Of a DNA stretch of 64,000 nt, positions 2,895 to 48,405 are shown one piece after another. The stretch spans positions 58,156,001-58,220,000 of the forward strand of contig NC_135656.1 in NCBI RefSeq assembly GCF_964188315.1, in the 5' to 3' direction. The first letter of the stretch is position 1; each line of letters begins with the position of its first letter. The position numbers and the translations under genes were made by a program. Origin of the DNA: Podarcis muralis. Taxonomy: Eukaryota. Below the pieces are notes generated by a model that was given only the letters and a program-made list of their open reading frames with translations, did no database searches and was not told the DNA's origin.

Positions 2895-3548
<654 letters not shown>

Positions 3549-5327
3549 TCATCTCAGGGTCGTGGGGTTGGGCAAAATATTCCAGCGGGCCAGGAGTTGG
3601 ACTCAGGGATGCCAACTTGAATAAAATATTGGGGGGGGGGGGGAGGAAGGCAAGTCACACCCCGCATAACTGATAATTGAGCCTGGATAACTCAGCTGGT
3701 CAGAGCGTGGGGCTGATAATGCCAAGGTTGCAACAGTTGCATAGTCCTGCAGTGGTCCCTGAGTTTACTATCTGCAAACGGGCGTTTAATGCTCACAACC
3801 GGTTCTATGATCACATGAAGTGGCGCGCACACGCCATTTGAATTGCAATACCCATCAACAGGGGGGCTTCCTCAAATATTTTAGGGGGGGGCAAAGGACC
3901 CCTAGAAGTTGGCTCCTATGGTTGGACTAGATGACACTGGGACATAGCTGTCAACGTTTCCCTTTTTAAAAGGGAAATTCCCTTATTCCAAATAGGATTC
4001 CTCGCAAGAAAAGGGAAAAGTTGACAGCTATGCCCTGGGATCCCTTCCAGCTCTTACGATTCTGATTTCAATGGCCTTATTTCCCCTGCGCCCCCCCCCT
4101 TTATTACATGTCACATTAAGCGGTACAGAAAATAATTAATAATAAGAATAATAATAGAGGGCTTCAAAGTTGGCTGCCAGCCCTGCTGCCCTAAAGTACG
4201 TCTCCCTGTGGCACCCACCGCTACGCGGTCGGAGCCTTTTTAATGGGAAGCGCTCAGCAGATGAAACTGAAGGACCCAAGAAGGGTAGCATCAGATTCAA
4301 AGTCCGGCTATTCCAGGGATGGCCAGCTGATGGGTGCGCTTCAAGATGCCGTTGGCGTCCACTTCCCATCATCCCTGGCCTTTGCTGATGCTGGCTGGGG
4401 CTGACCGGGGGTAGACAATATCTGGAGGATACGACCTTGGCAACGCTGGAGCTAGTTGCGTACTGGCCAGCCCGATGCTTCCGGAAAGCGTCTCCGCTCA
4501 GCTGAAGCTCGATTAAGATGCTGTTTAGTTAACAGCTAATATACTGTCTCTCCGTTGTGGCATCTTCATGCCAGATTATGGAATCACTTGGTGGAATTTC
4601 TGGAGGCCTTGCTAAAATGTAGCAGAAAACTACCGTAGAAGTATTCTGCCAAATGCTTTGCAAGGGTGCAACATGGTTAAAAGTCATAGTTGCTTCTGAG
4701 CCATTTAGAAAGGAAAAAAGGGACAACCAAAGTAAAGGGAGAAACACTTCGAGCATGTTCAGAATAGCTTTTCTTTCTCTAAAAGAAGAGCTGTCATGTT
4801 CAATAGATTTCTGCTATTTCTTTCTCCTTTAATCCCCCAAATATGAAAGAAATCTATGAGTTAATCTACTAGCTTATTGCACGCAAATGCATTGCTCACC
4901 TGATCTAGCAATATAACCCTGGCACTAAAAATAGATTTGGGGCCACCTTGTAAGGACAGCCTATATTAATTCTTAAGTTTATTGAAGTGGATATGGAAGC
5001 ATGAAGTTTATTTATTTTTAATGGTCTTTCATGTTTTAACTTTGTACGTTGCCTTGATGTTTTATGCTACGATAGTGTCGAAACACTGTTTAGAAATTTT
5101 AAAAAAGGATGGCAGAGGGTGACTGGAATGTTAAAAACATGCAGGATCAGCACATTAAACTGTTGTTTGTTTTTTAAAATTCTCCACTGTATATAGACAC
5201 CTATGGGCACTGTATATAGACACCTCCATTTTATGTAGACACCTACCACTCGCTCAGCCCAACTTATGCATTTGATAAAATTAAGCTATTGCCTTTAAAA
5301 TATTGCACAACAATGTCAGCCTTTAAA

Positions 5328-12118: not shown

Positions 12119-12427
<309 letters not shown>

Positions 12428-15400
12428 TTACAATTGGAAAGGGCGGGGGGGGGGGAATAAAAATGTCCAAACTGCTTCTCCTAACTCCCCAGCCCAAGTC
12501 AGCGCCACCCAACTCTCCTTCGGAAAGGAATCTGAATGAGGTCTGGATTTGTAGCCCAAATCTTCCTCCAATGCATCTTTGCACAGCAGCGAGAGCTCCT
12601 GGACTGGAACCATCGCGTCTGTTTTAGAAAGCCTCATCAAACACAACCCAGAACCAAGGATTTTCCATTACAAAAGCAAAGGCCAATCCAGCCCCGATCC
12701 TGACCTACAGTCTTCCTTTTACGCAAATGACAACAGATATTTTGTTTTGGTTTTGTTTTCATAATGTACTTTAAGAGATTCAAGGTGGGGAAAACATTTC
12801 TTTAAAAGGCGTGGGAAACCTTTACAAGTCATTTCTTTAGGCACTTTTAAAAAGTCTCTAAAAACAATGAAGAATTCACATCGATTTTGTTGTTGTTGTT
12901 TTTGGATATTTTCCTAGCAGGCACCAGGACACAAAATATACTCCCCACAAGGGGAAAGTTTGAATTTACTTAACCCGAAAACGAAGCCTTTCACACAACT
13001 GGATTAAATTTCTACTTTGGGCATTTGGATTTTGACAGTCAAATGATTTTTCAGTTAGGTAAAATTGAGAACCTCATTTTTCTATGGTTCCTTAAATAAA
13101 GTAAAACAACAGCAGCAAAAACAAACTACATTTGATCCCACCTACACGTTTCAAAAATGGAAATTATATGATTTTTTTCCAGTTTCAAAGTGCAAGATGT
13201 GTGCACGTGCACACACAATTTAAGGCAAAACATAATATCTGCTAGTTAGTTACAGTACAGCATGTACAACTGGTACAAGCTTCTATTGGCACATTACATC
13301 AAGACCGGGGCTTCACTCTACGACCCTCTGAAGTCAATGAAGGAAGACTTCGAGGGCAAGAGCTCCATTGACTTCAACGGGCAAAATTTAATCATATTCT
13401 GAACTCTGCCTGACATCCATAGGACTTTCAAGATGTCATAGGTATGCGCCCTGGAGTGCAAGTATCCTCGCCTTCAATTGACTCGCTTCCGAATAAATAC
13501 GCACAGGATCGTGCTGCCTGGGCAGTGGTTAAATATATTGCCTTTTGCTGGTTCGATGTCTCCATATTTTTTCCCCTGCTTAATAATATTAGTATATTTA
13601 CTTAAATTATACAACGTTCATTTTATAGCAATGCATTCTACAATGGGGCGAGGGGCGGCGACGGCGGGGAAATCTATGGCTTCTTACTTCTTTAAAAGCA
13701 ATATAAGAGGAAATACCTAGAGAGGTCAATTTGATTTCAGTGAATTTCGTGGTTCACCGGAACTACGGTGCTAACATATTAATGTAGAAGAAACATATTT
13801 CAGACCGGCGACCTTTTTCTATCATGCAGCACGATCCTCTACTTGTTTACTCAAGAGAAAATCCCAGAGTCCAATTGGGACTTGCTCCCAAGGGGTTGAC
13901 TCCTAAGGTGATGCTTTGAGAGCACTAATCATTTCGTCTTAACTGAAGCTATTCAGCTTGCAATCCCTGGCAACAAATATTAACCACTGAACCCAGCGGC
14001 ACTTTCTTCCGAGTAGAAACGTTTAGGGTTGGGTCACCAGTGGTCTGTTTTTCTGCATCGATATATTCGTTCATTATTGCAGAGCCACTCCAATTTTACG
14101 GGCTTGCAAACCGGTTTTTAAACTCATATTTTACGAAGTATTTTATCAATAGCAATAGACACGTGTGTTAACCGATGATGATGCGTTGCGCGTGTCAATC
14201 GTAGTATGCAAACAGGAGTCCATATGCAAATCTTTTCAGGTGGGATTATGTGTACTCCACACATAATCGACTATGCAAACGAAGCAAATATTATGAAAAC
14301 CACCCATTTTACTCGACAACGCTTTAAAAAAAAGTAACATCCTCAAAATAATTGCAGTAAGTTTTAAAACAAAGGGACTATGGACCTCAGCCATAGGCTG
14401 TTGTGTGTGTGTGTAGAATGAGAGCGATTTTGTTCTCACGTACATAAAACTTTTTTTTTAACAGGCTGATGTATAACAACATTATTTGAAGTCCCAGTGC
14501 TATGGCATTGACTTAGGATCGTCACCTTCTAATTTCTCTATGTATTGAAACGCACAAATTGTAATTGAATCCGTGCGTAAATATATGTACAACACATCCG
14601 TGTTTATGTAATTAACAAACCAAACCAAACCATAGCACAGGATCCATCAAACAGCAAGCTCTTTCCTCCCATTGATTTCAAAGGTGAGATTAAAGCATAC
14701 ACTTTAATCAGTGGGATGTGGGGGGCATCAGAATCTCCCCCCCACACACACTTTGTTTGGATCGGGAACTATGTGCCATTCTATAGAGCGAGAAGAATTC
14801 CGTGTGCTCCTATCAGTGTGTGTAAGGCACGCACAGCACACATACAAACACGCGCACGCATACACCTCAAGGACTCACGCGAACAAGAGTGAATGCGCTT
14901 TAATTCGCATCTGGAATGTTTATCCTAAATCCAAGGCTTAGTACTGAATTAATTTCCTTGAAATGTATTTCCTTGAAACGTCGCTTTATGTATCGGGCAG
15001 TGAGGATCTGAAAATCCTAAATAAACGAGCTCTCTACTCCTGCAAAAAACCCTCATTTCCCTTTAAGTCACCGATTAATGCCTATCCCCCGCTCTGGCTG
15101 TGCTTAAACTGACTCCTGCGTCCATCTGGGAGCTCTGAAAGCAAAGAGGCGAGTTCAAACGGTTACACGGTTCAAACCCCAAAGTGGTAAATGACCTTAT
15201 TGCAGCCTGTGATAGCCCTCTTTCCAGTAAGCGGTTTGCAAAGCAAACAAGGCCTGGAACGCGCTCGCCTCGTTAAAAGTTTCCTTGGTGGTGTCCAAGC
15301 CAGAAACCCATCGCTACCCAGATCCCACCCACTCCAGCCCCGGCTGGGCTCCTCCACCTCGCCATCCCTGGAAAGAGGGTCCGGCTGGCTAGCAGCACAG

Positions 15401-17623: not shown

Positions 17624-18620
<997 letters not shown>

Positions 18621-35394: not shown

Positions 35395-38300
35395 ACCTAA
35401 TCTGAAAAAACCTCTTTTAAATTATTCTCCTATTGCACTCATAATCTTAAAATATGGGACACGACTCGCTTGTGAGTCCTTTCCCCCCCCCCAAGAGAGT
35501 ATTAGACAGGCCCCTAACAGACCACTCTTGTGCATGTTGACTTCGAAGTAAGCCCATTTTCTTAGGACTTCACTGTGCGTCTATCCTGATCTCAGGGTCA
35601 AAGAACCGTAGAGTTGGAAGGAACCCAAGTGTCATCTAGTCCAACCCCCTCCAATGCAGGAAGGATATACCTTGTAAGAAAGGAATCGACGTAGCTGTGT
35701 CCCTTTCTTGGTCTTCCTCATTTTTTGTCCATTTACATATAACCGCTCTCTCATCTATAACTGGGGGGGGGGGGGGCTATTCTAAGCTCCGCATCAGTAG
35801 TACTGTATTCTGTTTTGGGGGGAATACTTTCTGCTTCTGCATTATTATTTTTAATTTGAGAGTTACATAAATTAGTATAAAACAGCACACTGCTGGCTTG
35901 AGGTTAAATGGTTGTACCCTCCTCGACTTTGAAACCTATCAATAGCGCAATCCTAGGTCTGTTTATGGAGAAGTAAGTCTCACCCAATTCAACGGCGCTC
36001 ACTCCGAGGTAAATGTGCATGGGATCAATTCACTTTGTACACAAGGAATTCGGATTAACTGGTTTGTCAGCTCAGAGCACTGGAACCCAAATAATGAAAC
36101 CAGGAGGGAGGTGGAAAACATTCAATGGTGTGCACACTAACGGCGTGGGATGGGACGCGACTGGTACGTGTTGAACTCACAAAAAGCAGACAAAAGCTAA
36201 TATCAGTCAATTATTAAAGCCTTAAATCGCCAACGAAGACCTCCGCGTGGTTTAAATGCAGTTCCTCGCTCAAATGCAAAGCACACAGTCCCAGGGGAGG
36301 GTGAGCGCCAGCCACGTCTCACCGAAGCCCGAAAGGCAGGAAACTAACCGCACGGATTGCCACGAGAATCTCCATTGCGCGCACTGAAACTTAATCTGTC
36401 CCGCGTGTGGGGGGGGAGAAGTTCGCATCCCGCGCCACCAAACCCAGGAGACAAAGACACTTATGCGAGCACCGCGACAGCTCCAGACGCCCATTATCTG
36501 CGGATCATTATTTGCCTGCATTTCCCGGCCAAGGAGCGCTCCATAAGGAGATCAGCGAAGTCGGTCCAAATCTTGCGCCCTTTTAAATCTGGAAGTCCGT
36601 CCCCGTGGGAGGGTGAAGCGGGACTTCATTCCCAGCTAGCTTTGGAGAGGACTGCAGAGCCACGCCAACCAAGGGGCAGCTCTCCGATCCCCGACCTCAT
36701 ACGTGCTGCGAGGTATAACTGATCCTCGAAAACCAGTTCCACGGGGACTTACTGTATTTCCAAACCATTTGTTTAGGTCGCTTCAGGGCGCGAGTCCCAC
36801 GAAAGCCAACTGAACCAATGCCCAACGCCTTTATTGGGGGAAATAAATGCATTTAATGATGGGGACGTAGATATAGGCTGAAATCGAAGCTTAGGGAAGG
36901 GGGACCCTTGCGGCGGAGCGGCGGCTCTTAGGATTTGCAAGCAGCCTGCTTCTTCTTAAAGCCGCGAGTCCCTGCGCGCCTCCCCGAGGCTAACGGAGTC
37001 CCAGGGGCGCGGCTCCTCCAGGCCTCTTTCTCCCACTTGCCCAAAGCGTTATAGAAGCGTGATGGCGCCGCGTTGCCGTCGGATCTGCCCGCTCAGCTGC
37101 CTCTGCCCTCCACCAACAGCCCTGGGCCTGCAGCCCCGCCACTCCGTCTCTGCGGTGGTGGTGTGCTTGTGGTGACCGGGAGGATGCCACGGGGCGGGAA
37201 TCACACCGGCCCCGTCCTTGGAAGCGGACCCGTGGCCTTTGGGCCCCGCAGGCGGATCCTTCGCCGGCTGGTCTGTCCTAGCCAGGGCGGAGAAGGAGCA
37301 GAAGGCGCCTGCCCCGCTCCAGGTGCCCCTAGCGTCCACCACCGTGGCAGCCATCCAGAGCGAGGCTGGTTTTATAGAGCCTTTTATTTTACACGGGACA
37401 ATAAAACAGCTCCCTGAGCCGTTTGCCAACATAAAAACACCCCCGACGACGGAGGTGCCAATGCAAAGCGGAGGGCAACGCGCTTTGGGCTTGGGAAGCG
37501 ATCGCAGCAAGAAGGGAAAGGGGGAGCATTCAAGAAGAAGGAGGCACTTTTTTTGGGGGGGGTTCAGGACCCCAGAAACAGTCTCTCCCTCTCTCCGTGG
37601 GCACTTGACATGGCTAGACGACGTTTACGCACTTAAGCGCGAGGCTGCTTTTTATTAAGGGTGTGTTGGGAGAACAAGCAGGCTGGTAGGTTTTCCTCGC
37701 GCATGGCGGCCCTCAGGACTGGAGGTCAACTTCTGGCCCTTTACACAAACCACTGCCAGGTCAGCACCGGCGCCCAAGCAGCGTCAGCGCTTGGAGAGGC
37801 GTCCCAGAGGTCCGAGGACCAACCCAGGCATGCGGGGGTCGCCCAGGAGGAGGAAATGGAAAGTTACAGGGGCTACAACAATAAGCCACAGGCCCTCCTC
37901 CCTCCAAGCACTGGGGGACTTCCCCCTCTCTTGGGGGTGCACAAGAAGAGAAAAACGAATCTCCTCGCTGATCAAAGCGTATCCTGACACGTACAGCCCA
38001 ACAAGCAACATCCCCTCCGCTGTGTGGAGTTCAGCAACTCCCTCACAACTACCACCACTGCGTTATTGCAATCCATGAAAGGTGGGGGGCTGTGCATGAC
38101 CCCCCACCTTCTGGCTTTGCCTTGCTATTTGATTCGCAGTCATCCTTGTCTTCGGGCAAAATCCCTCCTTTAGCCCCATGACGGGATCCCACTCCCCTCC
38201 TTTAAAAAAAAAATATGCAAGGGGGACATACAACCACACAAAAGAATTTGCTCGGGAGCTTGGTCTGCAAAACTTGCCTCTGGGCGATCTATTTATTCAA

Positions 38301-40277
38301 GTGACATTCCATCTTTAAGCTTCAGAAGTGGATAAATTCAAGCTAGAAAACCCAGATTAGTTAAATAAATGGGCGAGGACCACCTACTTTCTCTGTCTCA
38401 CCCCCCACCCTCTCTCTTCAGACGTGGCAAATGCACTCTTTCGCCAGCACTGGGACCTAGTGTGGGAGCACCATATCAGCGATCTAGCTGCACGGATTTG
38501 AGAGAGAGTGTGCGTGTGTGTGGACTCGTGTGGAGCTCTGACTGTAATAGGATGAGGCATCGCGCGCTGCGCAGATGCAACGTCTTTAATATATTACTGT
38601 CCAAACAGATGATGGGACTTTAATAATAAGGCAGCGGCCCTGAACTAAACGTTGGGAGAGCTGACAAAAACGCGGGCTAAAAAACAGAAAGCTTAATTTT
38701 CCCTGACAGATACAAATGACACCCCAAGGCTTTTTCGAAGAGCAGCAACTGGCTGCCGGAACCGCCGCTGATCTCTCCCGCTCCCCTCCACCCGCCGCTT
38801 GAGCATGCTTCCCAAAGCTGGGAAGATAGAAAAGCCCTTCCCTCCCCCTCTCCCCTCCCTCTACAGCAAAGCGAGCTGGGTTTCCGCTTGGCACCGGGAC
38901 AGCCGGCCTGCTTGCCTGCCTAAGGCGCGCCCGGGTGACTGCAGGGCCCCCAGGCCGCCAGAGCGCAATGGCTGAGCCTCTCTCGGGGGGCCTCCGCCTC
39001 TTGTTAGGATGCTGAGGCTCTCTTGCGTCCTGATCCTGGACGTTTCCAGGAGGAAGAGAAAAGGAGATGTTTGCAAAGCGCGTGAGGGAAGAGGTATCAG
39101 ATAATAAGAGCGGGCAGAGCATCTGCTTTGCATGCAGTCCCGGGTTCAAGTCCCGCCATCGCCAGGCAAGGGCTGCGAAAGGCCCCTGTCTGAGCCGCTG
39201 CCGGGCCAGCCACGGGGAACCTCTGGCCCTCCAGATGTTGATGGGTCCAGACAGCCAGGGGGAGGGTGACAGCTGTACTCCTGCGACATCTGGAGGTTCC
39301 ACCGGTTTCCTCATCCTTGGTGTAGACAATAGTGGTCTGTCTTGCTATTCGTTTAAAAGGAAAGAGGTCCCACAGTTCCAGTTTCTCCTAAAAGAAGCAG
39401 CCCTTGGGGCTGAAATACACGAGTGACAGCCTGGCACTTCAGTTTCGGGACAATTACATTGAATCCCATTTTGGACACCGTGAGGCTGAAGGCACGTAGC
39501 AGGGACCCCGCCCGACTCAGTGGCTTCTGAGTCGACGCGCTCCGAATCCCGGCTCTAGGTCGCACTTCGAGGCGACCACTCACTCCTTGGCTGGCCTGGG
39601 ACTTTATTGCTGCAAAATCGAGATGTTGCGTTGCAGTAGAACGCGCTGCATTCCGACTTCGGCTGCAGCCCGGTCCTGTGCATGTTGAAGACACGGAATA
39701 GGATTCGCTTTCCAGGGGGAAAGAAAACGCCTGTTAGGCTGCGCTGGGCACTTACACCAGAGCAGATCTATTGATCTTAGGCGGGCCCCGGAGTCCACGA
39801 GCTGCGGGTTGCTGTCTTCTTTAATAGCTCTGACTATCTTCGGAGCAGGAGAGAAGGGGAGTTTCGGAAGCGTCCGGAGGGGCAGGATAAGGAACTATAA
39901 TATCGTTCCTTAGCTCGCCCCCTCTGGGAACATGCTTTTCAGATTAATTGATGGAGGAAAAGGGCAGGGGAGTTTGTTAACCAGGCTGCTCATATTACTC
40001 AGGGCATCTCTTCATCTGAACTTGGTGCGCTTTTTTCCTTCTTCTTCTTCTTCTTTAGGGGGGAATTAAAAAATATGCCTCTGATCCAGTGTAATCAAAA
40101 GCGCAGGAACCACTAGCCTCTCTCATTCGTTAGGGAGCCTTCCCAAGCTGAAAAGAAGCTGCAATCGGAGCCACTCGGGATTGTGTTTCCAACATGTATT
40201 TCCACCCCCCCTCCTTGTCCTTGTTTCATTCAAGCAAGCCTCTTAATTGCTGGCAGTATTTTGCTTGGTGAGGGAGG

Positions 40278-40321: not shown

Positions 40322-41468
40322 AACACTCCCCCCCCCAAACGGGACATTTCCTGAAAGGCTGAAGTATTCTAATAACGCACGGGGCTTTTTAATGTGCTCA
40401 GAGCAAACCCAGCCAGGAATGTTTCCTGTTTCAAACGACAAAAAAATCAGACAAATAATTACCCTTTGTGGAGAACCAACAAACCCAAGATGTCTTTAAA
40501 CACAGCTAAATTGACAACCCGGTGACTCTGCTGAGGAGAACGGTCAACGACCAATATTTAATAATGGTAATTATAAACGTTTCAAGAACTTCGTCCGCGC
40601 CCGATAAAACCCCCATTAAGAAAAACGGAACCCAGGCAAGTGCAATCCACAAGTCAGCTAAGCGGAGCTAACCACGACATCGGCTAAAATCCTTTCTGCT
40701 TCTGAGTTTAGCTGCGGATCCGTATGTATATTCACTCTAGAAAGTTTTATAGGAGGTTTTTTTTTTTTAAAAAAAATCTAATCATCATTATAAAACAGTT
40801 TTCACTGACTCCCCCCGAGTCGACACTCTATGGAAAGTGAGCCTCGTAGAAGGCGATCCTGCACCCATTGGCCCTGATGAAAACCCCGCTGGATTCCCCC
40901 TCCCCCTTGAGATCAAGTACTTGCAGGATCGCAGCACCCAAACAACATCCCCACCTTGAACATGTTTCTCTGGAAGTCAGAAAGCCACGGGACTTTATAC
41001 TTCCAAGTTCTTATCAGCGTGTGCCAGCTCCATCCATTATCTTCCCTGCAGTCATGGGGTCCAGAGAGCAAACAACGTCGCAGAGAAATAGCTCAGATAG
41101 GGCTGGTGATGCCTTTGCAGTTGTATTTGGGGGGAAAAACATCCCGCTTTATCTTAACACTAGTAGCAACTTGATAGGGGGGTGAGAGTCAAATATTCCC
41201 TTAAAGTCTTTTTTTTTGGGGGGGGGGGGAGAGAGAGCCGAGTTAATCAGCAGCACACGCAGAGTTCGAGATAGCGAGGCAAGAGTAAATAAAAGAAACG
41301 CGCCTCAATTAGTGCCTATAGAAATCCGCCCAACTAAAAAAGGGCTCAATGGACTTTACTAGAGTATTAAAAGCGACGCGGAGCCTAATGCCCAGGAAGA
41401 CACCCCCCTCTCCCCTCCCCCGCTTCCCTGCTATTCCGAATTTCTCTAGCGAATAGACACTGTCTTAC

Positions 41469-41514
41469 CTAAATCCACATAGGGAGGGATACTCTTGGGC
41501 AGACCCAGTTCCAT
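41469..41514 (-). CDS. PITX1: Putative alternative first coding micro-exon of Pitx1 (PITX2a-like; exon 41522-41469)
   Basis: TTGTTGTCTACACAG|ATTGTATT-ATG GAA CTG GGT CTG CCC AAG AGT ATC CCT CCC TAT GTG GAT TTA G|GTAAGA, giving MELGLPKSIPPYVDL+1 nt (46 nt, phase 1). Strong Kozak (A at -3, G at +4). In frame with exon 12384. Confidence 0.72.
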
Positions 41515-44485
41515 AATACAATCTGTGTAGACAACAAAACACACCGTAAATGAATCGCATGGGGATGCTCGTATGTGTGTGTATCTATGCATGCATGTTG
41601 GAAGGGTGAAACAGATAGATTTATACCAAAACCACGATTGTTATTTTTTAATGGAAAAATCCACATCCAATATTTCAGCTGAATGCCTTTTCTTAAGGGC
41701 CTATACCCAAGCCACCTCTTGCAAATAGGGGACACTTAGGTCCCGCTGATTTCACTGTTTAGGCACGTGCTTAGCTCACTTTAATGGAAATCAATGGAGG
41801 AATTAGGTTTGGCGGATCACGCCTGGGATTTATTGGGAAGTCGGCTCTACTGTCCCAAGGTATGTTAAGATAGCTCCCCTCCAAACAGAAAATCAAATGG
41901 CAGCGGCAAGTGTTTGACAGTCACTCTTGGAAAGCTGTATTTTAGCAAAAAGCTGCTTTCCCGCACACTGGATAGGGAGATTTTATAAAGCGAGCGGCTG
42001 CAGTCCTATTCCCCACTTATTCTGTGTTCCTCTGAGCACGGTGCGATTTACTTCCGAGTAAACATACAGAGTCGGGTTGCATTGGCGCAATCTAGAGCCA
42101 AGAGTGGATTTCCTACTAACTTGGACAGGATGCCAACCCCACATTCAAAACTACAGAAGCTGAATATCCCGTTTTTCCTTTTCTCCCCAGGGCTCCTCGT
42201 ACCTGATCGAGGTTTTCCGAATGGGGCGGGGTGTTGGGGGCAACGGGAGTACGAAAACACAAGATTAGGAAACTATGGGAATTTGCAGCTGGGCGCTTTC
42301 TTATCTTAGCAAGCAGTTAAATTTTTAAAAAGCCAAATAAAAGAACATTTCACCCGTCCACATAGTACTGTATTATCCAGACTGGAACTATTAAACAGAA
42401 GTAGTTTGCCACTCAATCTTAATATGTTTACTCATAAGTAAGTTCCATGGGATATATCTCCCAGGGTATGTTTAGGACTATATCTCAGGAGAGAGAGAGA
42501 GTGTGTGTGTAATTAAAATGAAAACCACACAACCAACACCTATCTATTCCCGGCTCCCCTCACTGTAATAGTAACAAGAATTTCCAGGGTGGATAACATG
42601 CAAAGAAACTAAAGATATTAGTCTAACCTCAAATTAGACAGGAACAGATTTAGAACCTTGACACAGATGTGTGTACACACATATACAGAAGTGTACACCA
42701 GGTAGCTTCTCTCTCTCTTATGGTGCTACTGCCTTATTCACAACAAAGGCAACAACTGTTGACAAATGCTTGGCTGATTGTTTTATTTATTTTTATTTTA
42801 CTCTACAATCCATTTTAAACCCCAGTGTTGTTTGGATTTAAAATGATTATGGGACTGGCACCCAGATTTTGATTTATTTTTTAAAAAAGTAATCAGCCTT
42901 GATAGAAATAGAACTTACTTCCAAGTAAAACTTAAGTCCTGAACAAACATACTTAGATGTCAGTTCTGTTTAAATAATGTAGCCTCTTCTATGTTTTAAT
43001 ACCAGGGTTTACTACGGAAACTTACATAAACTCAAGTAGTCTGCCTTAAGCTGTGCAAGGAGTGCAAAGAAAGCCAAGGAACTAATTTCTAGTAAGAGGA
43101 ACTAAGGATTATATTCAGCGTTTAACTAGGGCAGCAATTACTGTACATGGACGGGAAATGAACGTACATGCTTCATTATCAATAACACAAATCTCATTTA
43201 GGATTTAAGTCAGGACAGTTTTGATCGTGTATATATTTTTATTTAAATGGATATTTCCAGTTTAATAAAATAGCTTCCATTTAGGTTTTGAATGTGGAGA
43301 GTTTGATTTCCTATTTATTTTATTAAACCGTTTGTTTGCAGTTTAATAACTAGAACCAACAGTTATTTCGGTTTATGTAAAAAAAAAAAAAAGACATCGT
43401 CTTTGTAAGGCATCGGGTTTCCTACTTGATTTCTCTTTGGAGTAATGCATTCTTAGTTTTATTTGTTCTTCCTAAAGTCCTCCTAGACTTTTGGCAAATT
43501 ATTCGAGTTCTGGCGGATAAATCAGCGCTCTGAAAAAATCATTTGGACCTTAAGCTCTTGTCACATGACCTCTAGAAAAATACACCTGTGAAATATTAGG
43601 TTAGCCTTTTCAACTGCATATATATATTATAATAATACTTCAGGATCAAGTAGCTGCAGCTATAAAAAGAAAATCGAATTCCATAAAAATATAACATTTA
43701 TTAGCGACGTTCCGACGTGTTTCTTGTCATGCTGATCCACAACGCGCAGGAGACGAAATTGTCCCCTGCAGCCTTGACACTAGACAGCCCCGAGAACTGT
43801 CTCCCCTTGGCAAGAAGTTCTGGTTTGATTTCCATCTTTGCAGTATGCAAAATGAGGTAACCCCCTTGGAATTATTTTTTCGGGTATATTTGTCAGATTT
43901 GACGAAGCGCAGGAGCCCTCGAGAATTTATACAAGGTATAAAGAAGTCAAGGACTTGCAACTTCAAGGCTAAGCCCAGGCTGCAATTAGGAAAGCCGCGG
44001 GGACGGCGGCGACTTCGACGGGGAAAAAGGCCGAGGCAGCCAAGGAGAGAGAGGGCGGGGCCTGGCCGGGGTTGCCCGGCGAGCGACAGGATCCCTCCAG
44101 GCTGACAAAACCCGACGGGCGATCGGTCAAGGCGACTCCGCCGGACGGATCGTTCTGCGGGCCAGCTGATAACCTCGCTTTTTCATTCGCAAGAGAAATC
44201 CCCTTGGATGTGGGGTTAGGAACTCCAGATTCCGCCCCCCGCCCCCTTTCCAGATTTAAGCACTGCCCTCTAGAGTGGTGGTGGAGGAGAACCAAGGGGG
44301 TATATAAACAACGTGGGGTTTGGGGCGGGGGCAAAGGGGAAGCCTTCCCCGAGTCTCCCAAAACGATTGAGAGAAGGCTTCGAGCTCCCCTTGGACTACA
44401 ACAGACTCCGAGACCAGGAGCTCTGTGGAATCCGCAAACCGGCGACACCGGCCCGCCCCCGCGACCCGAGTAGCGAGGCGCTTAC

Positions 44486-45125
44486 CCTTGCTGGCGCCCC
44501 GGTCTTCTGGAGCGCCTCGTATGTTATCCCAGCAGAGAACGGGCTGCTAAAATTAGGATAGCAGCGGCGGGGGCGGCGGCCTCCTCCTCCTCCTCCTCAG
44601 CGCGCTCTAAGCGTCCTGCCAGGGTCCATGTCGACTCCGCTCTCCAAGCCTTTCGTGGGAAGCCGTCGGAGGGAGGCCCTTCCTTCCTTCCCTTCAGGGC
44701 GCTCCGGCCCAGCAGCAGCAGCCCTCCGCCTCCCGCCCCTCGCCTGCTCTGGTCCCCGGGCCCAGCAGGGAGCTGTGAGCAGCCGGCGCCGGGGGGTTGG
44801 CAGGTTTTCTCCCGGCGATCCCGCCGGCTCCTTCTGACGTCAGTCACCCAGGGTCCCACCACCAGCACACACGGTCGAGGAGTGGGGGAGGGGGGGAGAG
44901 AGAGACCCCTCCAGCCGAGAGCTGAGCCTTCCGCCGTGTATGCGTACCTTGCCCCGCGCCCTCGGTTTCTCTCTCGGACCCCGGCTCCCGCTTCCTGCAG
45001 TGCCGGCGGCCTCGAAGAACGTGATCCTTCCAATCCACCCCCCTCTTCCCGAAGGGGATCACCCTTTCCGGTGCGTGTCTGCCCTAGCAGAGGGCTGGTG
45101 CCAGTTGCCGAGGAGGCAGGAGGCG
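44486..45125 (-). other. Putative non-coding leader exon of a distal Pitx1 transcript (5' end approximate)
   Basis: Consensus donor CAAGG|GTAAGC at 44486/44485 at the edge of a CpG island. Minus-strand TATATAAAG at 45157-45149 places a TSS near 45125. Confidence 0.5.
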
Positions 45126-45440
45126 GCAACGGAGAAAATTCCCCCTGCCTTTATATATATACATATATATATATGGAGAGAGCGAAAGCTAGGAGATCCT
45201 GGAAAGAGGAGGGTAGGTTTGTTGGCCCACCTTTGGTTGGGGACCCTGCCTCGCCACGCTTTGGCAGAGAAGACATTCTTCTTGCAAAGGCGACCTCCTT
45301 TATCGCTTGTTATTCGGCCCCCCTCCTCCAGCAAGTCTCCTTGATCCCCCCTCGCCTATTCCCCTTTCCCCAATCAGGAGCAAAACGCGGAGGCCCCGAG
45401 CGGCCCTGATGAGGCACAGGGCCTACAAATTGGCTGCCTT
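44830..45440 (-). promoter_or_regulatory. Distal CpG-island promoter candidate
   Basis: Very high GC and CpG content. TATA box 45157-45150 (minus), CCAAT 45370-45374, ATTGG 45429-45433, palindromic CRE TGACGTCA 44835-44842. Confidence 0.55.
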
Positions 45441-48405
45441 CGTTTCCTTCTCTCAAATTGCCCCCTTCCACCCCTTGCAGCCCCCACCCCCAGCCGCCTG
45501 CTCGTTCCTTGCTCGCCACTGCCAGCGACAGACAACATTAACATTTCCTTTTTCCTTTTTCTTTCCTTGCCTTCTAGGGGATGATTATTATGGAGACCCT
45601 CACCCTGGCAGTGGATAACAAGGTCTTTGCCTGGGGATTTACAGGAGCAGGACTCCCTTCTCTTGCTAGGCCTAATCCTCCAGTTTCTCAAGTTAGCAAG
45701 GCCTTTTATTAAATCGCTGAATAACAGGATACAGCAACACACAGCCGAAGAAAGGACTAATAGGCCGGCGGGGGTCGGCGTGGTGGATTGGTGGGGGTTC
45801 GTAATAAGTGTTGCTAGCTTGCTGTTTCCTTATTGAAGCAAGAGCGAGCAAGCTCTCGATCATCCCATTGTGGCCAAGGCAGCAATCCTAAACTCTTTGC
45901 TAGGGAGGATGACCCATCGCACACATTAGAGCTTCCTTCTGCACAGGCTTGGCCCAACCTCCCCTATTTCCTGGGTTGAAGGGGACAGTGGTGAAGAAAA
46001 CTATAGCTTGTTTCCCTTTTCCTTTATGGAGGCAGCTTAGGAATGATGGTAAAGTTGGCAGGGGGTTGGTGGGGGGAGCTTAGCCTGCCTTGACAAAATG
46101 GCTTTAAGCCTAAGAGTCTTCCACTCCCCCCTTTTGGAGCTGATGATACAAAGAACCACCAGATTCTAGGTTTTGTACATAAATCACATATCCTGGTCTC
46201 GTGAGATTTAAGGCAAGGCAACTTCGGTCAAGGCAAGACTGACCCTCCTGAATTGGGGGATGCAGAGGAGCTAGGGGCCTGTTTGGAAAACAGGGTGGTG
46301 TGTGTGGGGGGCAGTGGTTTAGAAAAGTTGCAGTTGAGAACCTGGATTCAACACAAATCTGATTCTTAAGAACAGGTGTGCACAATGCAGTTTTTGAGCC
46401 AAACCATTTTAAGTGCAGATGATGATGATGATGATTTTCCTGCCTTTCACCTTAGAATCAAAGCACATAGTTCATAATACAGTTCATAATATACACTACA
46501 GTCTTCAAGATACTTGCTAGGAAGTAGTGCCATTGAACTCTGCAAGATGAATTTAGGATAAGGTTACCAGATTTTTTTCAGTGAATTTGGGGACACTTTT
46601 CAACTTCAATGGATTTTGTATGGGGACTGATTTGTAAATCCAGGAACTGCCCTCGGGAAACGGGGACGTCTGGTAAGCTTAATTTAGGACTTGGCGTATA
46701 CGTGTTTAGGACTATGGGTGGACTAGTTTCCTTCACTAGCTACTTAATTAAAAATGGATTTAAAACAATTACACCCTTATCCCCAAATTTGTTGTGTCAA
46801 CCATGATGCCTGCATTCCTCCAGAAAGCCATGGCAGCAGAAATGTTTAGAAAATGAGGTAACCAGCAAGCAACATACTCCAGTCTAATTAATGCACAAAG
46901 GGGTTAATGCCATAGAGTATGCACTCCCACCAGGCATAGCTATGTCACTTCCCCTCACCTTGGGAGGAAATAGGTAATCATTCCTATTGCCCCTAGTCTA
47001 CCTGAGAAACTCACTGTGTGAGGAGGTTTGAACTGGTTGCTGCAGCTCAACTGCTTGGCTCTTACCAGCCACTCTTGAGTTCCTATACCAATAATCTAGG
47101 AATTTTTACCACTTTGTAACTAAGCTAAGTTTTACTGCCTGTGCAAGTTTTCTGACTGATGTATGGAAAAGTACACGAACCAGATATTTGAAGAGTTTGT
47201 AAATAAACCAATTTTTAACTTACCAAACGTGTGGTCTTTTCCTATGCTGCTGGAAGGGAACTTACGGTACTTGAAAGGACATAGTTTAAAGGTCTAACAG
47301 CCGATATTTCCACACTTTACTTGCTGCATATTTTGTAACTTTAAATCTCTGCTGGGGTTCTCACAAAGCAGTACTTTTCCCAAACTTGGATTTTGGCATC
47401 TAGGAATTCTCTCATTCCCTGCTCCCCCCCCAACAGCATAGAATTTGTAGTGGTCTATGTGGACTAATTGCAAACTAAAATACCTGTATTTAAGAACCCT
47501 GAATCCATTATGTGGAGACAGGCTCTAGTGACATAACTGGATTTATTTCCACGCAAGCTTCAGGAGAATCGAGCGTTAGTGCTGTTACTTCTATTCTTCT
47601 TTGCCCTCTGTTCAACAAAATATGGATTTAAAGTCAGACTTGTTGAAATTAGTGGGGCTGCCATGCTAGGTGCAGTCTATCCAGTCTTCACTGAAATTGG
47701 AAAAACTGGACTATACTAAACATTGGAGTATGGGCCCATTTAAAGAAGTAGGAGTTAGTGCACATCATAGGCACAATCCAACACAGAGTTAGGTACACAT
47801 AAACCCATTGAAATCAATTAGTTAAGCAGGCCTAAGCTTAATTAGGATGAAGGCCTAGTTTAATTTACTTCTAAAAAACAGAAGGCTGCAATCTTCTGTT
47901 CACTTACCTGTGAGTAAACATCATTGATGTCAATGGGACTTGCTTTTGAGTTGATATGTCTAGGATTGTACAGTAAGACTGCTATAATATGCATATTTAC
48001 TTGGGAGTAAGTCCCATTGAAGACATGCACGAGTTACTTCCAAGTAAATATGATTGGATTAAGCCTGTATGTGTAACTGGGCTTCTTACTTATTTTAATA
48101 TAGTAAGATAGGGCTTTTATCTGAAATAAGTAATACTGTACATTAACTCAATAGTAATTCCGAGAAAGAGGTGGTAGAGAGATACTATGATACAAGAGAG
48201 GCAGACCCCATCTGTACTACACAGTGGCATCATAACACTAAACAGTCATGGCTTCCCCCAAAGACTCCATGGAATTGTAGTTTGTTGAGAGTGTTGAGCT
48301 TTGTTAAGAGACCCCTATTCACCCCCCACCCAAGCTACAGTTTCCAGAGTGGTTTTAACAATCCCTATTCCCAGGGAGCTCTGGTCTCTGAAATAATCTG
48401 TATGC

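Follow-up and report, generated by a model that had tools for sequence, protein, structure and literature searches.

Pitx1 determines the identity of the hindlimb and has become a textbook example of regulatory evolution, for instance through pelvic loss in sticklebacks. A described counterpart of the element reported here is the PITX2a/PITX2b first coding exon (METNCRKLVSACVQL plus 1 nucleotide, nt), which ends in phase 1 and places 15 residues in front of the homeobox sequence EK[DE][KR], as is also found in the short PITX1 of fishes. In PITX2a, this start exon is spliced straight to the homeobox exon, and a separate promoter serves the c-type exon. We analyzed a window of 64,000 nt from Podarcis muralis (NC_135656.1, positions 58,156,001 to 58,220,000; coordinates below are those of the window), which contains Pitx1 on the minus strand. 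Upstream of the canonical first coding exon and on the same strand lies a 54-nt unit, exon 1a, which is very probably an ancient alternative first coding exon of Pitx1 belonging to a distal-promoter isoform of 311 amino acids (aa). For both this exon and the PITX2a/b start exon, a distal promoter with a non-coding leader lies upstream. In contrast to PITX2a, however, tetrapod PITX1 models connect the start exon to the c-type exon via an internal acceptor.

Three conceptual products were assembled from the exons of the window. Splicing exon 1a to 17781..17632, 12384..12179, and 3428..2898 yields a protein of 311 aa, which is identical at 311 of 311 positions to RefSeq XP_028573916.2, named by NCBI 'pituitary homeobox 1 isoform X1 [Podarcis muralis]'; the homologue of Lacerta agilis deviates from it at two residues. 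Thus, for the 311-aa form, the annotated isoform uses the same exon and the same start codon. The first residues of this product are MELGLPKSIPPYVDLG, and the proximal-promoter product begins with MDSFKG, encoded by the canonical first coding exon (ATG at 17797, ending after 17632 in phase 1). A direct join of 41469 to 12384 is likewise in frame and open and gives 261 aa, as had been proposed in an earlier interpretation of the window made from its letters alone (hereafter the sequence-only reading), which had matched the phase 1 end of exon 1a to the acceptor of the homeobox exon. Equivalent models of the 311-aa type are found in Lacerta agilis, Crotalus tigris, Eublepharis, Heteronotia, Hemicordylus, Pangshura, Pleurodeles, Ranitomeya, and other tetrapods; the 261-aa form is not among them. 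Exon 1a is therefore already part of the public annotation of Podarcis muralis and is not hidden or new. The start exon, which the sequence-only reading had called hidden, is present in RefSeq isoform X1 of this lizard and in many other species, and the tetrapod models found to contain exon 1a splice it to the core of the canonical exon, not to the homeobox exon.

Every structural element assigned to the 54-nt unit by the sequence-only reading lies at its proposed position (Table 1). On the minus strand, the acceptor (...ttgttgtctacacag/, the slash marking the splice site) is followed by the untranslated region (UTR) ATTGTATT of 8 nt and by a start codon at 41514 in a strong Kozak context, with A at −3 and G at +4. 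The coding letters are ATG GAA CTG GGT CTG CCC AAG AGT ATC CCT CCC TAT GTG GAT TTA G/gtaaga, i.e., 15 codons plus 1 nt in front of the donor. The distances of 24 and 29 kilobases (kb) given at that time also hold, as exon 1a is located 23.7 kb from the canonical ATG at 17797, and a splice to the homeobox acceptor at 12384 would skip 29.1 kb.

Exon 1a and its upstream neighbor are found spliced together in RNA. Four RNA-type runs of Podarcis muralis (X1, X22, X24, and X9) were compared with positions 40700-46699. In run X1, a single contig of 298 nt (depth 5.8) contains the whole of exon 1a, with its first 244 letters on 44726..44486 and its last 54 on 41522..41469. The gap between 41522 and 44486 spans 2963 nt and reads CT..AC on the plus strand, corresponding to GT..AG on the strand of Pitx1. 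The predicted junction from 44486 to 41522 is hence present in an RNA contig. Further, the leader exon is covered by contigs at 44486-44726 and 44701-44866 in run X1 and at 44701-44934 in run X22. It is embedded in a CpG-rich block (GC content 0.60 in 44-46 kb), carries an upstream open reading frame of 10 codons with its start near 44630, and shares 82% identity with turtle over 44842..44758. A model of P. lilfordi (P0130) also spans the leader–1a junction (...ASK/DCIMELGL). Leader contigs, GC content, and leader conservation in sauropsids uphold the two-promoter, PITX2-like organization of Pitx1 that had been deduced from the letters. Run X9, which consists of raw reads, gave only 63 partial matches, located in the GC-rich repeat 44579-44723 and all continuing into unlike sequence, and is uninformative for Pitx1. 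In the triplet-repeat parts of the leader, the RNA contigs carry 3-nt insertions at window positions 44563 (GCG) and 44709 (CAG), which are probably allelic length polymorphisms.

Comparison with the Pitx1 loci of Crotalus tigris, Eublepharis macularius, Heteronotia binoei, Pangshura tecta, Leptodactylus fuscus, Amia ocellicauda, and Salvelinus alpinus revealed an orthologous exon 1a in all seven, each comprising an AG acceptor, a UTR, an ATG, 15 codons plus 1 base, and a GT donor. The UTR measures 8 nt in six of these species; in Amia, it has 9 nt, the AG being placed 1 nt further upstream and the exon measuring 55 nt. In the seven species, a distance of 7-23 kb separates exon 1a from the canonical exon downstream of it. 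Compared with the window, ungapped identity amounts to 81-93% inside the exon (four sauropsids) and to 80-83% over the 30 nt that precede the acceptor, and drops to ~20-47% further out on both sides. The conserved island thus coincides with exon 1a and its splice signals. Exon, ATG, frame, and splice sites are kept in snake, geckos, turtle, frog, bowfin, and char, and the ancestry that the sequence-only reading had proposed is borne out by the occurrence of the exon from ray-finned fishes to squamates. At the protein level, a search with the last exon returned PITX1 N-termini of the type ME[LI]xL[SP]K...G-GMNLERL in squamates, turtle, frogs, salamanders, bichir, bowfin, and teleosts. The tegu protein starts with the same MELGLPKSIPPYVDLG as the 311-aa product, and close variants occur in rattlesnake, geckos, frogs, bichir, and teleosts. 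Cluster listings with starts of the exon 1a type include Lacerta agilis, Podarcis muralis, Hemicordylus, the turtle Pangshura, and salamanders. The internal acceptor at 17781, which receives exon 1a in the tetrapod models, is kept in all species examined.

The peptide encoded by exon 1a resembles that of PITX2a, which starts with METNCRKLVSACVQL-EKDK in bat, MESNCRKLVSACVQL-EKDK in Sceloporus, and MDSHCRKLASTCVQT-EKDS in whitefish. Aligned in register, PITX1 exon 1a and PITX2a peptides share on average 3.8 of 14 residues over positions 2-15 (column-permutation p about 0.0003). Length and sequence therefore agree with the likeness to PITX2a that had been noticed from the letters, the phase of the PITX2 exon being taken from established knowledge. 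The likeness to PITX3 noted along with it extends over no more than the first few residues and does not reach significance when 15 residues are compared (p 0.12-0.28). Cyclostome Pitx starts are marginal in the same comparison over 15 residues (p 0.01-0.05).

Several observations weigh against this reading of exon 1a. Among sauropsids, the variable sites in the 15 codons are distributed as 7, 4, and 8 over the three codon positions, without a strong third-position skew. Because of this weak skew, constraint on the peptide itself is judged from the alignment to be moderate. The splice from 41469 to 17781 was not seen directly in Podarcis RNA, where the sole exon 1a contig ends exactly at 41469, and RefSeq isoform X1 is a computed model. 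In addition, runs X24 and X22 contain the 3′ exon of Pitx1 but no contig on exon 1a, with the limit that contigs show presence only; exon 1a use may thus be low or tissue-limited. The splice and start signals by themselves are unremarkable. A scan of the window for a pyrimidine-rich AG, an ATG at most 30 nt away, an open frame, and a GTAAG or GTGAG donor returned 27 units like exon 1a, 12 of them on the minus strand and 4 of these 12 in phase 1, so that the signals alone are not beyond chance. It is conservation, identity with the annotated protein, and the spliced RNA contig that place exon 1a above chance. A functionless mini-ORF (open reading frame) with splice-like signals, for which the 27 look-alikes could be cited, is contradicted by the identity with an annotated isoform, by the spliced contig, and by a start codon, frame, and both splice sites that are conserved from lizard to char. 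We consider it to have almost no chance of being correct.

A more serious question concerns the splice partner of exon 1a. The sequence-only reading had predicted a 'Pitx1a' in which exon 1a is spliced directly to 12384, generating the 261-aa protein that lacks the 50-residue segment GMNMERV...SDTEVP. That such a form exists at some level beside the 311-aa form is possible but rather doubtful. Exactly this architecture is annotated in ray-finned fishes, whose short pitx1 isoforms (bowfin X2; teleost X2, X3, and X4 of ~262-265 aa) connect exon 1a directly to the homeobox exon. The bowfin protein (261 aa) reads MEINLSKNISSCVDS-EKDR..., and a 238-member cluster of teleost isoforms of ~265 aa (MELNLSKNVISCGDP-EKER...) has the same join, which in the lizard is in frame as described above. 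Moreover, the X1 contig stops at the last base of the exon without loose letters, which in a k-mer graph assembly fits a branch at this point, since a join to 12384 would continue with A, and both the 17781 join and unspliced intron with G. This is a hint only, because the contig end could equally reflect loss of coverage at a depth of 5.8 or a branch to some other exon, and in frog model P0170 exon 1a is indeed followed by a further cassette. The core of the canonical exon (G/GMNMERV..., 311 aa), however, is included in every tetrapod model found with exon 1a. No tetrapod 1a–homeobox protein was found among representatives of at most 280 aa, listed cluster members, and short fragments around the start of the homeobox exon, a weak negative given that short isoforms can hide inside 90% clusters and that the fragments stem mostly from genomic contigs. 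Of the predicted exon-skipping form, the open frame and the fish precedent stand; in the lists searched, the form is annotated in ray-finned fishes only, and the tetrapod models join 17781.

The leader might, alternatively, bypass exon 1a. If exon 1a were a facultative cassette that is often skipped, the leader would be spliced to 17781 and translation would start at MNMERV..., giving the 294-aa RefSeq 'isoform X2', and only a fraction of the transcripts from the distal promoter would contain exon 1a. Isoforms of 294 aa starting with MN[LM]ER are modeled in P. muralis, Lacerta agilis, Pseudonaja, and Pogona, and that of P. muralis (P0136) is an exact suffix of the product of the window. Quail, too, keeps an element matching the leader/promoter region despite a decayed exon 1a. 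Since these 294-aa models could also reflect proximal initiation 3′ of the MDSFK ATG, frequent skipping appears unlikely, albeit plausible enough to be kept in mind. It adds to the best explanation, in which exon 1a is the first coding exon of the 311-aa isoform, and is not a competitor to it. Similarly tentative is the more general proposition that lizards and other tetrapods with exon 1a also make a short, fish-like and PITX2a-like PITX1 (261 aa) from the distal promoter in particular tissues, which we regard as rather unlikely. If true, the a-type/c-type duality of PITX2 would predate the Pitx1/Pitx2 duplication, and exon 1a together with the short-form option would have been lost subsequently in birds and possibly in mammals.

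The decay of exon 1a can be followed at one bird locus. In quail (Colinus virginianus), the 10 kb upstream of Pitx1 are collinear with turtle across the site of exon 1a. A relic is found at L009:3836-3889, in which the acceptor region is kept, the ATG is changed to GTG, an in-frame TGA has appeared, and no GT donor is present. Its alignment score of 51 compares with 22 ± 2.6 for shuffled sequence. The element retained in the leader/promoter region is connected to the lizard sequence via turtle 3553-3652. As far as the alignment goes, this pattern of decay fits that expected for a real exon lost in one lineage. In agreement, starts of the MEL type were absent among the bird PITX1 proteins in the lists searched. 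The 10-kb flank of bilby gave no significant match to exon 1a, although this flank may not reach the site, and the flank available for gharial consists largely of N.

At the internal acceptor, fishes and tetrapods differ. All tetrapods examined carry ATGGA[TC][TG]C[CT]TTTAAAG/G at this position, so that the acceptor region doubles as the start of the canonical product. In bowfin, the acceptor ttttcaag/GT is devoid of an ATG (cattgttttcaag/GT; Amia L004 around 13465-13480). Fishes are without the tetrapod MDSFKG start of PITX1, no such start being present among the fish proteins listed. Because bowfin has no MDSFK codon there and the fish lists hold no MDSFKG, comparison of these few species suggests that exon 1a represents the more ancient start and that the canonical MDSFK start of tetrapods arose in the acceptor region of the preceding intron.

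Taken together, we propose the following pathway for the 311-aa isoform. A distal CpG-island promoter, ~27 kb upstream of the proximal one, would transcribe the leader exon (at least 44934..44486), which is spliced to exon 1a (41522..41469), with translation beginning at the ATG at 41514. Exon 1a would then be joined to the internal acceptor at 17781 in the canonical exon, a junction deduced from gene models, and the transcript would continue through the homeobox exon (12384..12179) into the last exon (3428..2895). The predicted product is a full-length PITX1 with unchanged homeodomain, OAR domain, and 50-residue N-terminal segment. As the rest of PITX1 is unchanged, what matters most is probably that transcription from the two promoters can be controlled separately, accompanied by a different short N-terminal peptide and not by a very different protein; any functional difference between the isoforms is putative. 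From the earlier interpretation, the distal start exon, the leader junction, the ancestry, and the likeness to PITX2a are retained in this pathway, while the hidden status and the exon-skipping splice partner are not.

Table 1. Features of the distal and proximal 5′ parts of Pitx1 and its coding exons in the window (slash, splice site).
Feature	Position	Strand	Remarks
Non-coding leader exon of the distal Pitx1 promoter	44486..44934	minus	3′ end 44486 exact; 5′ end at least 44934
Intron between leader and exon 1a	41523..44485	minus	2963 nt, GT..AG
Acceptor, pyrimidine tract, and branch-point region of exon 1a	41523..41555	minus	80-83% identity to other sauropsids in the 30 nt upstream, 21-33% further out; alignments begin at 41555
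Exon 1a	41469..41522	minus	8 nt UTR, ATG, 15 codons + 1 nt (MELGLPKSIPPYVDL-G), phase 1
Exon 1a donor gtaaga	41463..41468	minus	GT at the matching place in 8/8 species compared
5′ extension with the proximal-promoter start ATG GAT TCC TTT AAA G (MDSFK)	17782..17797	minus	Doubles as exon 1a acceptor region
Canonical first coding exon, core	17632..17781	minus	Entered via internal acceptor tttaaag/GT; encodes (G)...SDTEVP; phase 1 donor after 17632
First homeobox exon (EKERSGVQK...RVR)	12179..12384	minus	Acceptor at 12384, phase 1
Last coding exon (VWFKNRR..., OAR domain, stop codon)	2895..3428	minus	

Additional conserved or transcribed elements surround exon 1a and the leader. The leader–1a intron harbors a block of ~600 nt with strong non-coding conservation (43394-44058), which is 75-82% identical to snake and geckos, 85% to frog over 123 nt (43970-43850), and 80% to quail over 77 nt (43925-43849); the block is a candidate enhancer of Pitx1. 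Within the long intron that follows exon 1a, positions 38240-38387 are ~80% identical to bilby, and the matching bilby segment also aligns to turtle. Three further blocks of this intron (38654-38733, 39926-40009, and 40332-40405) are each ~80% identical to quail. Judged by these alignments, all four are candidate amniote-wide regulatory elements. Upstream of the leader, the element 45577-45767 displays 74-87% identity in snake, gecko, turtle, and frog and is overlain by a low-depth RNA contig of run X1; it could represent an upstream alternative exon, a divergent transcript, or an enhancer RNA. At 46559-46641, word depth rises into the hundreds over ~80 nt in each of the three contig-based RNA runs. 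This stretch has many differing flanks and looks like an abundant dispersed repeat, similar to a short interspersed element (SINE), or an element derived from a small RNA.

Other variants of the PITX1 5′ end are annotated as well. In the frog Phyllobates (P0170), a further cassette is inserted behind exon 1a and ahead of the canonical exon. Paroedura (P0135), Sphaerodactylus (P0137), Rhinatrema (P0076), and Gracilinanus (P0043) have unrelated alternative first exons, whose splice partner is either the internal acceptor or the homeobox exon. In general, Pitx1 seems to have a variable 5′ end.

An open-access literature search found no paper on Pitx1 isoforms, alternative first exons, or exon 1a peptides. 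Little is added here as a discovery, since gene models for Podarcis muralis already contain exon 1a. For reading the regulatory landscape of Pitx1 in non-mammalian vertebrates, it matters that reptiles have a distal promoter and a start exon, both conserved and located 20-27 kb upstream, and that exon 1a has decayed in at least one bird.

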